A program made the translations under genes and the position numbers. The notes below the pieces were generated by a model that saw only the letters and a list, made by a program, of their open reading frames with translations, was not told the origin of the DNA and did no database searches. Below, one piece after another: positions 8,015 to 61,937 of a DNA stretch of 64,000 nt; within the stretch, counting starts at the first letter, position 1; each line of letters begins with the position of its first letter. This stretch comes from Octopus sinensis (Eukaryota), in contig NC_042998.1 of assembly GCF_006345805.1 (NCBI RefSeq), positions 21,452,001 through 21,516,000 of the forward strand, in the 5' to 3' direction.

Positions 8015-8150
8015 TTTGCTCACATGTAAGCTGTTCATGAAGAATTATATCCTGAAAGGGAAGTATTTTCTAAAGGAAATAACCTTTCTCACGTTAGTAA
8101 CGTAACCTGTCACTCCATTTATAAATTACTGCTAACACTACCCTCAGTTC
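8015..8150 (+). promoter_or_regulatory. Core promoter of dispanin gene A: E-box CACATG (8021), TATAAA (8120), TCAGTT initiator (A at 8146)
   Basis: Same motifs in the same order and similar spacing upstream of gene B (53872, 53989, 54016). Confidence 0.6.
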
Positions 8151-8259
8151 ACACAGTTGCTACTTCAGTGAGAAAGCTGAGTTGGATCACGAACATTTTT
8201 GGATTTTCCAAATTCAGTGTTTTATTGCTAGCAGCACGAAGCAGCAGAGATTCACAGAC

Positions 8260-8269
8260 ATGGAAGCCA
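8260..8269 (+). CDS. Dispanin gene A coding exon 1 (ATG GAA GCC A, phase 1)
   Basis: ATGGAAGCCA|gtaagt consensus donor; identical 10 nt and donor at 54138 in gene B; phase matches exon 2. Confidence 0.75.
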
Positions 8270-8724
8270 GTAAGTATATATTAATGAATTTTCGCAAGTC
8301 CTCATTATATATCCACTTCTAAAACTCTTTTTCTAAACACATTCTACGATTTAATCGATAAGGCGTTAACAAAATTCCAGTTTTCCATTCCATCAGTTGA
8401 CGAATGTTAATTAAAAACTAATTTGAACACGCTTGTAATATACGCTGGACTAACTGAGCCCAATTCTAAAAGGTATTGTTGATTTCTGATAAAGATTTTT
8501 TTAGCACCCTACGTGCATGTGAATGTATTCGAATGTTTCAACAACTATATATGTATGTGCGCTGTTGAGAAACGGAGAAAAAGAAAACTCCATACGTAAA
8601 AAAAACCCAGAATATTACAGTTGTTACTTTAAATTTAAGCTTCTTTATATACATTCACACAAACATACATGCGCACGCACATACATAAAGACTCACATAC
8701 ACGCATTCAAATATGTATACATGT

Positions 8725-8990
8725 AGATAGATAGATAGATAGATAGATAGATAGATAGATAGATAGATAGATAGATAGATAAATAAATAGATAGATAGAT
8801 AGATAGATGGATAGATAAATAGATAGATAGATAGATAGATAGATAGATAGATAGATAGATAGATAGATAGATAGATAGATGGATAGATGGATGGATAGAT
8901 AGATAGATAGATTGATTGATAGATAGATAGATAGATAGATAGATAGATAGATAGATAGATAGATAGATAGATAGATAGATAGATAGAAAT
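8725..8990. repeat. (GATA)n microsatellite
   Basis: Direct reading. Confidence 0.95.
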
Positions 8991-9014
8991 GGATATATAG
9001 ATATTTATATATAT

Positions 9015-9250
9015 TCTTATATTCCTTTACTTATTTCAGTCATTTGACTGCGGCCATGCTGTAGCACCACCTTGAAGAGTTTTAGTCGATGAAATTTACC
9101 CCAAGACGTTGTAAGCCTAGCATTTATTCTAAGGGTATCTTTTGCCGAACCGTTAAATTTCGGGGTCGTAAACACTCTAACATCAATTTCAAGGGACAGA
9201 ATAAAGGGAAGCACAAATAAATATATACGACAGGATTATTTTCATTTTCT
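9015..9250 (-). mobile_element. SINE family S3, 3' part (other copies 13620-13860 +, 22240-22580 -, 48410-48520 -, 52375-52460 +, 55140-55430 -)
   Basis: Shared tail gcatggccgcagtcaaatgactgaaacaagtaaaaga and body acttattctatcggtctcttttgccgaaccgct. Confidence 0.8.
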
Positions 9251-58290: not shown

Positions 58291-58293
58291 ATA

Positions 58294-58530
58294 GTGGAGG
58301 ATCGTGGCTTAGTGGTTAGGGTGCCAGCACCATGATCGTTAGACTGTGGTTTCGATTCCTGGACCGGGCGACGAGTTGTGTTCTTGAGCAAAACATTTCA
58401 TTTCGCGTTGTTCCAGTCCACTGGGCTGGCAAAAATGAGTAACGCTGCAATGGACTGGCGTCCCGTCCAGCTGGGGAACACATACGCCATAGAAACCGGG
58501 AAACCGGGCTCATGAGCCAGGCTAAGCTTT
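58294..58530 (+). mobile_element. tRNA-derived SINE, head H4 + tail T3
   Basis: gtggcttagtggttagg...ggtttcgattcc...ttcttgagcaaaaca, then a tail unrelated to T1. Confidence 0.75.
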
Positions 58531-58772
58531 GAAAAAAAGGGCGCATTTATTATATATATACATTAAGGATTCAGGTAGAAATGGGTGCCTGAAAAGATAT
58601 AGACCTTGAGTTAATTTACTTAACTCCTCATTTTCTGATGATGGAATACTTAGACGATGGAATCCTTGCTTGACACAACGTTACAATAACTTGGATAATC
58701 AAGCAACAGGCATTTGAGACAATGTGAATTGTCCTTGTAAAGTTTTGCCAAACTTTTTGCTTTTTCAATATA

Positions 58773-59994
58773 TTGGGTTAGCAACTAAGTTCCCACCGTT
58801 TTTTTTAATTTAAATTTTTAAACGGTTTAATAAAAAACAACTAATTAATCAATAATGTATTCACCCTTGTTGTTTACAACTTCTTCCCAACGTTCAACAA
58901 GATTTTCAATATATCGTTGCTAGAAATCCCCCGATTTTGACTTGAAAAATTAATCCAACCAAGCTCTCAAATCTGCATCAGTATTGAACGAAACTCTGCG
59001 CATAGCATTTGAAAGAGATTTAAACAGGTGGAAATCCGTTGGTACCAAATCAGGAGAGTACGGTAGGTGTGGTAGCATTTCCCCACCATGCGTTTGAAAG
59101 GCTTCCTTGGTCATATTGGCGATATGAAAACGGGCGTTGTCGTGCAGCAGAAGAACTCCATGCTGCCGATTGGGTATTTTCTCTTGAATAGCCGTGTTGA
59201 GTCGTTCCAGCTGTTGAACATAGTTTGCTTCCGTTCAAGCAATTCGTAATGAATAATCCCTTCCCAGTCCCACCATACATACAACATCGCTTTTCGCGGA
59301 TGAAGATTTTATTTCACGCGCGGTGTCGCTTGTTTATTTTAGCTAAGCCATTCCTTACGCTACTTCATGTTGATGTACAGACACCATCTTTCGTCACCAG
59401 TAACGATTCAGTAAAGAAATCGTTGCTTGTGTCCATGAATTGAGCGGTGACGAGCAAGCAAACCAGCAGAGAATGTGGCTCGTTATTTTTTGTTGTCACT
59501 TAAAGCATGCGGAACCCATGCTCCATACTTCTGAACCTTTCCTATCGAGTGAAGATGCTTCTCTATAGTAGTGTGGTAGCATTCCATTTTCTCTGCCAGT
59601 TACTTTGTCGTTTGACGAGACTTTTCGTGCAAAAGTTGGTTTAATCGCTCTCCATCGAACTCAAATTGGACGGCCAGAACGAGCTGCGTCTTTGAGGTCA
59701 AAATTTCCATTTTTGAACTTGGCATACCACTCACTAATAGTTCTTTCAGCTATGACACCCTCTCCATACACAGCACAAATGTCACAAGTAGCTTTTGCGG
59801 CCTTAGAATCTTGATTAAAAGCAAAAAGGAGGTGTCGAACATGCTCGTTTTCCTTAACTTGACATTCCATTTTAATGATCGGAAATAAACAAATATTAAC
59901 TAAAATTAAATAGAAAAAAAAATAGATTCCAAAATTTAAAAACGTAAAAAAATCAAAAATTTAAAAAAACACGGGAACTTAGTTGCGAACCTAA
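58773..59994 (-). mobile_element. Decayed mariner with TIRs and TA TSD
   Basis: ttgggttagcaactaagttccc / gggaacttagttgcgaacctaa; FDLKDAARSGRP and YSPDLVPTDFHLF motifs; frameshifted. Confidence 0.9.
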
Positions 59995-61617
59995 TATATA
60001 AATACACACACACACACACACACACACACACACACACACACACCACACACACACACAAACACACACACACACACACCACACACACACACACATATATATA
60101 TATATATATATATATATATATAAAACTGTAGTTGTGTGAGTGTCTGTCCCCTTCGATTTAGATTCCTAACTACTCCCACATTTTGCGATGCAGTGTAACC
60201 AAAACCGGGTATCTTATAGTCGTGATTCATATCGAGCCCTTCTGGGTATTAGCGCGCGTCTACGATGAGTCTACGATTTTAAAAAAAAATTACCATCATT
60301 TTTTATTCCATTTTAATGCATTTTCGCTGTTATATAAGGGAAGTAACTCTCTAAAAATGTCTACGATGAGTCAACGATTAAAAAAAGAAATTACCATCAA
60401 ATTTTATACCATTTTTAATGCATTTTTTGCTATTTTTTGCTATAACTCACTAAAAATGCTTATATAGTTATTTCCCTTACAAACCCGAGCAACGCGGGCG
60501 ATACTGCTAGTATATATATATATATATATATATATATATATATATATATATATATATATATATATGTATATATATATTTATATTGAATGATCTATTGTAT
60601 CAAATTATTAATACTATTAAAGTATTTATGTATTTAATACGAGCAATTATATATTATATAATTATATATTTTATAATCAGATTATATATACTTTCTGACA
60701 CAACAATTAAAATATATTTTAAATCATTTATTTATTTTAAATCCTTCATGTTTCTCCTCCCTCTCACACACATACATTACTTTGGGCGCAAAAGAGTTTT
60801 GTTTTAATTTTACGTCGATGAAAAAGTGTTTTGTTGAGAATCCATTTATTTAACAACAAAGAAACAAAGAGGTAGGAAGCAATTTGTCAGTGAATTACAC
60901 AATATATATGGGTACAATTTCCGAGGTTTCCACCACACCCCACCTCTCCTTTCTCCCCCACTCATTTGTCTCCCACTGAAATTAATCAACTCACACTTGA
61001 TTAATCTATTTAATTGTCATGCCTACCACATTATGAGATTACTTTTTCTATTACATTTATCACACATCCTTTCCTCAATAGTAATTTCACAAGGTTAAGT
61101 AGATTGTCAACAACTGTTAAAATTATATGTTGATTTCCATCGATCCGACGATCTATTTGCAATTGGAAATGTAACGAAAATAAATCATGTTGTTTGAAAC
61201 ATCGTCTTTGAGTTACACACTTTTCAATATACTCTGCAAGAATCATCATCATCACCATCATCATCATCATCATCAGTTACGTCCTATAACTCCATCATCG
61301 TCTGATTTTCGGGTCTCTTCGTTACGTATATAATGGAATTGTGATTATGTATATCAGAAACTATATATATAAGTCGAAACAATTTTATAATTGTTTATGT
61401 TATTTAATATTGTTATATTATAATCATAGTAATTAATGTAATATTGTAATATAGATAAATCATTGGATTGTCAATAGTATATTTCTAATTAATGTAATAG
61501 TGATGGTATTAATTAATTTTTTTAATTTTACAGCATATAACATTTGTTGATTAATTAAATATATGAGGAATGTACACTTTGAAATACCGCTTGTGGAATC
61601 TAATTTCTTTTTTACAG

Positions 61618-61937
61618 ATAACACGAAAACTGCTGAGCGGAACGAGGAACCACCAGGATACTATGATAACCATGGATACACAACTGATTTTTATAATGCT
61701 TCGACATCTGGACATTCCGAACAACCTGGATATCCACAACCACCAGCATATACACCACGCTCCGAATATCCACCACAAACGGAATATCCACCACCACCAC
61801 CATATACAGCACAAACCGGATTTCCATCACAAACGGAATATCCACCACAAACAGAATATCCACCACAAACCGGAGACCTGTCACAACCAACACCTGTGCT
61901 ACAACAACCACAGCGACAACAACAGCAAACTGTTATT
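61618..61937 (+). CDS. Dispanin gene B coding exon 2, Pro/Tyr/Gln-rich (PPGY, PPAY, PPPY, EYPPQT repeats)
   Basis: tttcttttttacag|AT AAC ACG...ACT GTT ATT|gtaagc, 320 nt, phase 1/0; homologous to gene A exon 2. Confidence 0.8.

Follow-up and report, generated by a model that had tools for sequence, protein, structure and literature searches.

A complete CD225/dispanin gene and the 5′ half of a second within a tandem array of Octopus sinensis

Proteins of the CD225/dispanin family regulate membrane fusion and vesicle traffic: the IFITMs are antiviral, PRRT2 takes part in neurotransmitter release, TRARG1 acts on GLUT4 traffic, and PRRT1 works at AMPA receptors. SNARE regulation is a further function known among PRRT1/TRARG1/SynDIG-type members. 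Vertebrate IFITM genes have a two-exon plan, and the N-terminal PPxY motif of IFITM3 binds NEDD4 and overlaps a YxxPhi sorting signal. Coding sequence that changes faster than nearby introns is usually tied to host–pathogen or other molecular conflict. To our knowledge, very little is known about dispanins outside vertebrates. The CD225 superfamily has been described as regulating vesicular transport and fusion (PMC11730294), PRRT1 is described in a preprint as an AMPA-receptor auxiliary subunit (bioRxiv 10.64898/2026.06.24.734257), and dispanin C is reported to be patchy in invertebrates (PMC7653359). Mollusc CD225 genes, among them 10 IFITM-like/dispanin genes of Aplysia californica, have been listed as putative antiviral effectors solely from their domain content (PMC9334734). 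Here we analyse a 64,000-bp stretch of chromosome CM016860.1 of Octopus sinensis (∼21,452,001-21,516,000, placed from the coordinates of the gene LOC118767386), called the window and numbered from its first base, which contains one complete CD225 gene (gene 1) and the 5′ half of a paralogue (copy 2).

We consider it probable that the window belongs to a head-to-tail array of CD225/dispanin genes of PRRT1/TRARG1 type, which arose by duplication in this lineage, is subject to diversifying selection, and in which copy 2 was once complete. The complete member, gene 1, consists of the following exons (the slash marks the exon boundary).

8260-8269, + strand: micro-exon 1, coding part; ATGGAAGCCA/gtaagt, ends in phase 1 and encodes the start of the product P0001
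13988-14202, + strand: exon 2, …aaaag/CTGAGG … GATACT/gtaagc; Pro/Tyr-rich, predicted-disordered N-terminus with PPKY (overlapped by YCEL) and PPPY
21619-21726, + strand: exon 3, …gtcag/ATGGTA … TGGAAA/gtaagt; linker and first hydrophobic segment of CD225
29855-30007, + strand: exon 4, coding part including the stop, …tctag/GCACAA … TGTTAA; conserved loop and weak second hydrophobic segment

These exons splice with compatible phases into a 161-residue open reading frame (ORF), the donors are canonical (GTAAGT, GTAAGC and GTAAGT) and the acceptors are all AG. A preliminary description of the window, made from the letters alone, had proposed just these four exons and donors, and it was correct to the base, with 14202/21619 and 21726/29855 being the junctions of the RefSeq model; the two peptide strings it quoted occur once each, both on the + strand (21646-21726 and 29855-29953). 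The same description regarded the gene as hidden, which it is not: the product is identical over its full length (100%) to the RefSeq 'uncharacterized protein LOC118767386 [Octopus sinensis]' (P0001; CM016860.1:21,460,260-21,482,007), whose record holds the identical model and an already precomputed CD225 domain.

Compared with the Pfam profile of CD225 (PF04505), residues 85-148 of the product match positions 4-67 of 68 with 47.4 bits (E = 2.1e-12; gathering score 27.1). With a score above the gathering threshold across the whole domain, gene 1 is a member of the CD225/dispanin family, as had been claimed. It has the two hydrophobic helical segments, with a conserved polar loop of about 25-30 residues between them, that mark the domain; the Kyte–Doolittle peaks (19-residue mean) are 1.75 at residues 89-107 and 1.52 at residues 139-157, and the latter segment (LFIGILCHTAFLIQHIYCT), which includes two His and one Gln, compares with 2.4-3.1 in other O. 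sinensis paralogues. The conserved core, a Cys before P-x-G-(I/L)-x-A in the first segment and a Gly in the loop, is present: in an alignment of 34 sequences (A4), C97, P100, G102, A105 and G119 each show no variation or a conservation of at least 90%. An AlphaFold2 model computed from a 34-sequence alignment has a mean predicted local distance difference test score of 64.8 (66-96 in the domain), predicts residues 1-85 to be disordered and without secondary structure, and places helices at residues 86-96, 99-117 and 121-160. A Foldseek search of the Protein Data Bank (PDB) with this model returned generic helical hairpins only, all with E > 1, NCBIfam gave nothing relevant, and Rfam had no match within the window.

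Further CD225 proteins of O. sinensis on the same chromosome were collected by an exhaustive HMMER search, cluster look-ups and a profile search. The preliminary description had spoken of a pair while allowing that more copies may flank the window; the flanking copies exist on both sides, and the supposed pair belongs to a larger array, which has at least six units over ∼240 kb, every unit lying on the + strand (coordinates on CM016860.1).

21,303,497-21,350,388, + strand: P0048/P0049 locus, two complete units (A and B), upstream of the window
21,360,624-21,388,364, + strand: P0047, upstream of the window
21,460,260-21,482,007, + strand: gene 1 (LOC118767386)
from 21,506,138, + strand: copy 2, with promoter, exon 1 and exon 2′ in the window
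21,532,739-21,544,265, + strand: P0009, downstream of the window

Five mapped units follow one plan, in which a 10-nt coding micro-exon is followed by an N-terminal exon, exon 3 (36-37 codons) and exon 4. An array that matches this one is present in O. bimaculoides and consists of LOC106884202, one unannotated unit, LOC106884205, another gene and, on the opposite strand, LOC106884203. P0009, P0047, P0048, P0049 and P0003 (the product of LOC106884203) also pass the Pfam threshold for CD225. Members of the array bear the RefSeq names 'annexin A7-like', 'serine/threonine-protein kinase atg1-like' and 'actin-binding protein WASF2'; CD225 is the sole Pfam domain in the scanned O. sinensis members and the only one that a look-up gives for the 'WASF2' product, and these misleading names are artefacts of the low-complexity N-termini. 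The RefSeq model P0049 ('annexin A7-like X4'; positions 10001-56892 of locus sequence L004, ∼100 kb upstream of the window) crosses a unit boundary: unit A contributes exon 1 and a 5′ portion of exon 2, and the model continues with a 3′ portion of exon 2 and with exons 3-4 from the next unit, B, which lies 34 kb away. P0048 and P0021 are not recorded as the longest isoforms of their genes. Within L004, a fragment of exon 3 (52575-52640) lies directly upstream of the real exon 3.

The units have their 5′ ends in common, and the putative core promoters of the two units in the window are the following.

8090-8126, + strand: gene 1, conserved block CACGTTAGTAACGTAACCTGTCAC (8090-8113) and TATA-like element TTTATAAAT (8118-8126)
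53959-53995, + strand: copy 2, CACGTTAGAGACAAAACCTGTCAC (53959-53982) and TATA-like element TTATATAG (53988-53995)

Promoter, 5′ untranslated region (5′UTR) and exon 1 can be aligned across eight units of the two species (alignment A3), including the CACGTTAGTAACGTAACCTGTCAC block, the TATA-like element and …CACAAACATGGAAGCCA/GTAAGT, and micro-exon 1 is conserved in all paralogues of this alignment. From position and conservation we infer that these blocks function as promoters. The 24-nt CACGTTAGTAACGTAACCTGTCAC element lies ∼30 nt upstream of the TATA-like box in all array units of both species (at ∼9.8 kb in locus sequences L002-L006), and it is a candidate for a shared transcription-factor site.

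Self-comparison of the window placed the start of copy 2 at 45,878 bp downstream of gene 1, and the two aligned at 8085-8299 versus 53954-54179 (70%), at 13890-14024 versus 61531-61666 (82%) and, in intron DNA, at 14580-14724 versus 61980-62122 (81%). These alignments agree with the earlier claim of a second copy 45.9 kb downstream; promoter, micro-exon 1, the start of exon 2 and intron sequence are shared, and copy 2 is a real paralogous 5′ half within the window. Its exons are as follows.

54138-54147, + strand: micro-exon 1a (e1a), ATGGAAGCCA/gtaagt, donor intact
54336-54345, + strand: micro-exon 1b (e1b), a local partial duplicate of 5′UTR and exon 1, donor dead (ATGGAAGCCT/ATaagt)
61618-61937, + strand: exon 2′, open, 320 nt, phase 1 to 0; acceptor ...ttttacag/, donor ATT/gtaagc

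Exon 2′ encodes 107 Pro/Tyr/Gln-rich residues with PPGY, PPAY, PPPY and EYPPQT repeats, and together with e1a it forms an open N-terminus of 110 codons with three PPxY motifs; PPxY motifs had been reported in the preliminary description, and both gene 1 and copy 2 contain them. The amino-acid identity of exon 2′ to exon 2 of the downstream paralogue P0009 is 65%, and the annotated proteins searched with the copy 2 N-terminus gave no match. The second exon 1 copy, e1b, lies ∼200 bp past e1a, and its lesion (donor GCCT/ATaagt) recurs in O. bimaculoides, in the promoter and exon 1 with which L002 ends and which are positionally orthologous to copy 2. Use of the e1b 'ATAAGT' donor as a U2-type AT-AC intron was rejected: the AC before exon 2′ would give ATG GAA GCC TAG, an instant stop. 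The O. bimaculoides gene LOC106884203 (P0003) was considered as the orthologue of copy 2 for its LOC number, which is next to that of the gene 1 orthologue, and was ruled out: it is ∼91 kb off, has the opposite orientation, and its collinearity is with the P0047 locus.

From the promoter to just beyond exon 2, copy 2 and the P0009 gene are collinear (window 53.5-62.2 kb versus 9.4-18.2 kb of locus sequence L003, which runs from window-equivalent 70,739 onward; 76-98% identity), and past exon 2 this collinearity breaks off in repeats. No CD225 exon 3/4-like sequence other than that of gene 1 was found in the window by tblastn. CD225 exons past position 61,937 had been a prediction of the preliminary description; a complete unit, P0009, does lie further downstream, and the nearer DNA that was searched for 3′ exons of copy 2 comprised 61,938-64,000 and window-equivalent 70,739-80,738 (L003 1-10,000), on either side of the 6.7 kb of window-equivalent 64,001-70,738 (CM016860.1:21,516,001-21,522,738). 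Positions 1-6341 of the O. bimaculoides sequence L007 are orthologous to the 3′ part of P0009 and include an intact exon 4 (ANTMAQNGNLEG…HITYKYI*). The spacer that follows this exon 4 (L007 3698-5138) has two counterparts in O. sinensis, one after P0009 and one at L003 173-1424, the latter adjoining window-equivalent 64,001-70,738 on its far side. Because of these two counterparts, the duplication that yielded copy 2 and P0009 must have taken in the spacer after exon 4; therefore copy 2 was a whole unit at the outset, and the prediction is that exons 3′ and 4′ of copy 2 lie near window-equivalent 67-69 kb. Judged from this layout, recognisable CD225 exons of copy 2 are likely to be present within window-equivalent 64,001-70,738. 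That copy 2 is still an intact gene is somewhat doubtful, because RefSeq has no annotation for it.

A different use of copy 2 would be as an alternative 5′ cassette, spliced over ∼28 kb to exons 3-4 of P0009 as a second N-terminus. The phases permit this, since exon 2′ ends in phase 0 as exon 3 of P0009 requires, RefSeq already models a cross-unit transcript in the array (P0049), and the DNA searched between copy 2 and P0009 (61,938-64,000 and window-equivalent 70,739-80,738) holds no CD225 exon. The 6.7-kb interval between these two stretches counts against the cassette, as 3′ exons may lie there; no annotated isoform includes exon 2′, and the duplication included the spacer after exon 4, so that copy 2 originally had 3′ exons of its own. 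We therefore regard a cassette as quite improbable, compared with a copy 2 that arose complete.

How the units evolve was judged from divergence between the two octopus species. The O. bimaculoides sequence L002 is collinear with 5.8-54.4 kb of the window at ∼83-91% identity, and therefore gene 1 and the start of copy 2 are older than the species split. Compared with the O. bimaculoides orthologue, the coding sequence (CDS) of gene 1 was less conserved than its flanks in each of the longer exons: 65.7% versus 87.6% identity in exon 3 (Fisher p = 4e-7), 68.4% versus 88.5% in exon 4 (p = 6e-7), and 79.5%, plus 75 gap columns, versus 91.7% in exon 2 (p = 9e-4). A second pair, exon 4 of P0009 and the O. 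bimaculoides exon 4 in L007, behaved in the same way (CDS 75.6%, flanks 88.7%, p = 2e-4). Hence in two independent ortholog pairs CD225 coding sequence diverged 2-3 times as much as adjoining non-coding DNA. The step in identity matches the limits of the coding sequence; within exon 4 the low identity stops with the stop codon, beyond which the 3′UTR of this exon is conserved. By the Nei–Gojobori method, exons 3 and 4 of gene 1 gave a nonsynonymous divergence (dN) of 0.47, a synonymous divergence (dS) of 0.28 and a ratio (omega) of 1.6, with adjacent introns at ∼0.13. In exon 3 a core of 13 residues is conserved, a point against plain decay, and the excess of change is located before it. Upon polarising the substitutions with paralogue outgroups, 13 versus 14 fell on the two lineages, most sites being unassignable.

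Gene conversion from a sampled paralogue was examined as a cause and rejected for want of a donor, identities to paralogues being ≤0.68 versus 0.66-0.70 to the orthologue; donors among unsampled units are possible. From the sequences compared, we infer that the rate contrast reflects diversifying selection, with short gene conversions among units possibly helping. This result also changes where fast evolution is placed. Rapid divergence had been ascribed to the N-termini, and this is correct only in part: in copy 2 and P0009, which are young paralogues, exon 2 (82.4%) and the flanking introns (85.3%) have diverged to a similar degree, and it is the CD225 exons that change faster than neutral. 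The N-terminus is drifting, by way of indels and altered repeats, and is not in a race.

Several observations weigh against an array of selected, functional units. An omega above 1 is not significant by itself (Fisher p = 0.15), and synonymous sites of gene 1 are raised ∼twofold over introns (p = 0.015); therefore part of the excess of divergence is not due to selection at the protein level. The O. bimaculoides orthologue of gene 1, LOC106884202, has ATA in place of the start ATG (L002 10021-10030), an upstream ATG being used, and a 1-bp deletion in exon 4 (L002 36174-36327) that leads to a premature stop and truncates the domain; because of these two changes its 153-residue RefSeq product falls below the CD225 threshold (16.5 bits). 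This copy may be a pseudogene or may reflect an error of sequencing or assembly. In O. sinensis itself, the second hydrophobic segment of gene 1 is the weakest of the family, copy 2 has no annotation and carries the dead donor in its second exon 1 copy, and tblastn with eight paralogue domains found no CD225 exon of copy 2 in 61,938-64,000 or in window-equivalent 70,739-80,738.

Most of these points would also suit a birth-and-death array in which gene 1 and copy 2 are decaying duplicates, the O. sinensis ORF is a transient survivor, and the exon excess comes from patchy gene conversion. The frameshift and changed start in O. bimaculoides, the degenerate second segment of gene 1, the unannotated copy 2 with an e1b lesion common to both species, the elevated dS and the exon-3 fragment beside the real exon in L004 (52575-52640) are all compatible with it. 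We nevertheless hold it unlikely: decay alone cannot outpace the neutral rate, and dN exceeds the intron divergence ∼3.6-fold; the exons of the two orthologues are at least as close to each other as either is to any sampled paralogue; the 13-residue core of exon 3 is conserved; and in O. sinensis all splice sites and the ORF are intact, with a Pfam score well above threshold.

The preliminary description had also likened the genes to IFITMs. Those relatives that have names come from fish, bivalves, corals and hemichordates and are PRRT1-like, TRARG1/TUSC5-like or SynDIG1-like; neither the 41 hits of the exhaustive HMMER search nor the 87 of the profile search included a protein named as a vertebrate IFITM. 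The sole solved structure matched by the family profile was that of PRRT1 (PDB 9zks, E = 4e-7). The best reciprocal similarity is to PRRT1/TRARG1/SynDIG-type proteins, and the architecture, a Pro-rich N-terminus (15-26% Pro in array members) followed by a C-terminal CD225 domain, is theirs too. Judged by these hit lists, and not by a tree with vertebrate IFITMs, the octopus units resemble PRRT1/TRARG1/SynDIG-type dispanins, not IFITMs. The PPxY motif, offered as a parallel to IFITM3, is not special to it: every array member has PPxY at residues 11-18, and 29 of 34 wider relatives across animals have it within the first 45 residues, near the N-terminus. Therefore the motif is ancestral to the PRRT1/TRARG1/SynDIG-like branch and is not by itself a specific parallel to IFITM3. 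A YxxL/V sequence overlapping PPxY is found in gene 1 (PPKYCEL) and in its O. bimaculoides orthologue (PPLYDDL, PPSYDEV), and this YxxPhi overlap is not present in other array units, so that PPxY with an overlapping signal does not discriminate here.

These motifs bear on whether the array might be a set of IFITM-like antiviral or anti-parasite restriction factors that block fusion and entry, are ubiquitinated by Nedd4-type ligases via PPxY and are engaged in an arms race. The PPKY/YCEL overlap of gene 1 does resemble the PPxY/YxxPhi overlap of IFITM3, but it is confined to gene 1 and its orthologue, and the PPxY itself is ancestral to a group in which no IFITM was found among the relatives. 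Tandem amplification of units, two ortholog pairs in which coding sequence outruns the non-coding DNA beside it, and a promoter conserved while the coding sequence varies would fit an arms race, and adaptive evolution is documented for bat IFITMs (PMC6907390); arrays and fast evolution, however, occur in non-immune families too. On balance a restriction array seems distinctly improbable, and an antiviral role of the octopus array is possible but unsupported and stays speculation. A still broader proposal would see here a system for diversity that is driven by conflict, in an animal that lacks interferon, where fast-diversifying fusion modulators stand behind a conserved promoter and leader, cross-unit splicing mixes PPxY cassettes with CD225 domains, and copy 2 is one such cassette; we consider this very improbable.

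In the reading that we prefer, the window holds two consecutive units of a head-to-tail CD225/dispanin array, gene 1 complete and copy 2 represented by promoter, exon 1 and exon 2. Each unit is planned to comprise a conserved TATA-type promoter with 5′UTR, a 10-nt micro-exon for Met-Glu-Ala, an N-terminal exon and two CD225 exons. The N-terminal exon supplies a predicted-disordered, cytosolic Pro/Tyr/Gln-rich stretch, always with an acidic-PPxY at its start, one CD225 exon supplies the first hydrophobic segment, and the last exon the conserved loop and the second hydrophobic segment. By homology, the products are probably small hairpin-type membrane proteins of the PRRT1/TRARG1/SynDIG branch. 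From what is known of the family, they may reside in endomembranes or at the plasma membrane, and they would act as modulators of membrane fusion and vesicle trafficking. The acidic-PPxY would most likely dock WW-domain ubiquitin ligases of the Nedd4 family, and in gene 1 the YCEL overlapping PPKY may act as a sorting signal. The array would have grown by tandem duplication of whole units in the octopus lineage, with regulatory and leader sequence conserved while coding sequence diverges faster than adjoining non-coding DNA. Copy 2 most likely arose complete, with exons 3′ and 4′ predicted in the 6.7 kb just past the window.

The units are embedded in DNA that is AT-rich (34% GC) and contains many repeats, a make-up expected for eukaryotic DNA. 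At the 5′ end of the window, 569-5249 is an AT-rich (21-26% GC) tandem duplicate of ∼2.3 kb (569-2940 versus 2881-5249, 98% identity), which carries on the minus strand a 433-residue Asn-rich ORF (1299-2600) with a YIGST…R…H-type stretch and no Pfam match at E ≤ 0.01; positions 1-5778 have no match at E ≤ 1e-20 to O. bimaculoides L002, with which collinearity begins at ∼5.8 kb. The spacer between gene 1 and copy 2 contains an intact 344-residue ORF of a Tc1/mariner-type transposase (38591-39625, + strand; HTH_Tnp_Tc3_2 and DDE_3), and an inverted copy with 90% identity is found upstream of P0009 (L003 3498-5309), where matches of the DNA to the window are mostly repeats. Retroelement remnants occur at 26314-26877 (+), 50598-50990 (+) and 56368-57822 (-); an RT_RNaseH fragment lies in intron 3 of gene 1, and two further long ORFs have retroelement-like motifs and no Pfam match. 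One of these two, a 484-residue Pro/Ser/Thr-rich ORF, is in a GC-rich block at 56-58 kb in intron 1 of copy 2. A transfer-RNA-like short interspersed element (SINE; …GGCCCAGTGGTTAGGGCAGTGGGCTCGCGGTCGTAGGATCGCGGTTTCGAT…) is present in numerous copies, as is a second repeat, at sites including 7551-7936, 15984-16371 and 14255-14450; in O. bimaculoides LOC106884205, the translation of the second repeat (…RLHRPQCVTGTYFIDPERMKGKVDLGGI) has become the C-terminal end of isoform X2 in RefSeq. Long microsatellites (TAGA, TA, ATT) occupy 8.7-9.8, 20-21.2, 21.9-22.2 and 33.8-34.1 kb.

A literature search found no paper on these loci or on a cephalopod CD225/IFITM cluster. Relative to the literature searched, the array, the unit structure, the conserved promoter and the contrast between exons and introns are new; gene 1 itself had already been predicted. 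The locus offers a concrete and testable gene set for cephalopod immunology and neurobiology, and it corrects names in RefSeq, since the proteins called 'annexin A7-like', 'serine/threonine-protein kinase atg1-like' and 'WASF2' are all CD225 proteins.

Among described systems, the closest are PRRT1/SynDIG4, TRARG1 (TUSC5), PRRT2 and SynDIG1 (subfamilies B and C), which share with the octopus proteins the core motifs FC-x-x-P-x-G-I-x-A and Y/F-S-x-K and the loop Gly. The long Pro-rich, predicted-disordered N-terminus with an early PPxY is the same in PRRT1/TRARG1-type and octopus proteins, PRRT1 is the best profile match among solved structures, and most of the named database relatives are of this type. 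However, identity is only 25-35%, over a domain too short and diverged for a reliable tree of the sequences used, and the octopus genes differ in forming a lineage-specific tandem array, in having a coding micro-exon and in evolving fast. With IFITM1/2/3 (dispanin A) they share the Pfam family, small size and an N-terminal PPxY, to which gene 1 adds an overlapping YxxL-type motif as in IFITM3. They differ from them in having four coding exons where vertebrate IFITMs have two, and a single Cys beside the first hydrophobic segment where IFITMs have a Cys pair. The loop motif GxxxG (described in PMC7665892) is GxxxC in gene 1, whereas clustered paralogues and fast evolution recall what is reported for bat IFITMs (PMC6907390). 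Mollusc CD225 repertoires, with several CD225 genes per genome, are like that of the octopus in this respect. The locus is thus no new kind of system; it is a lineage-specific array of a known family.

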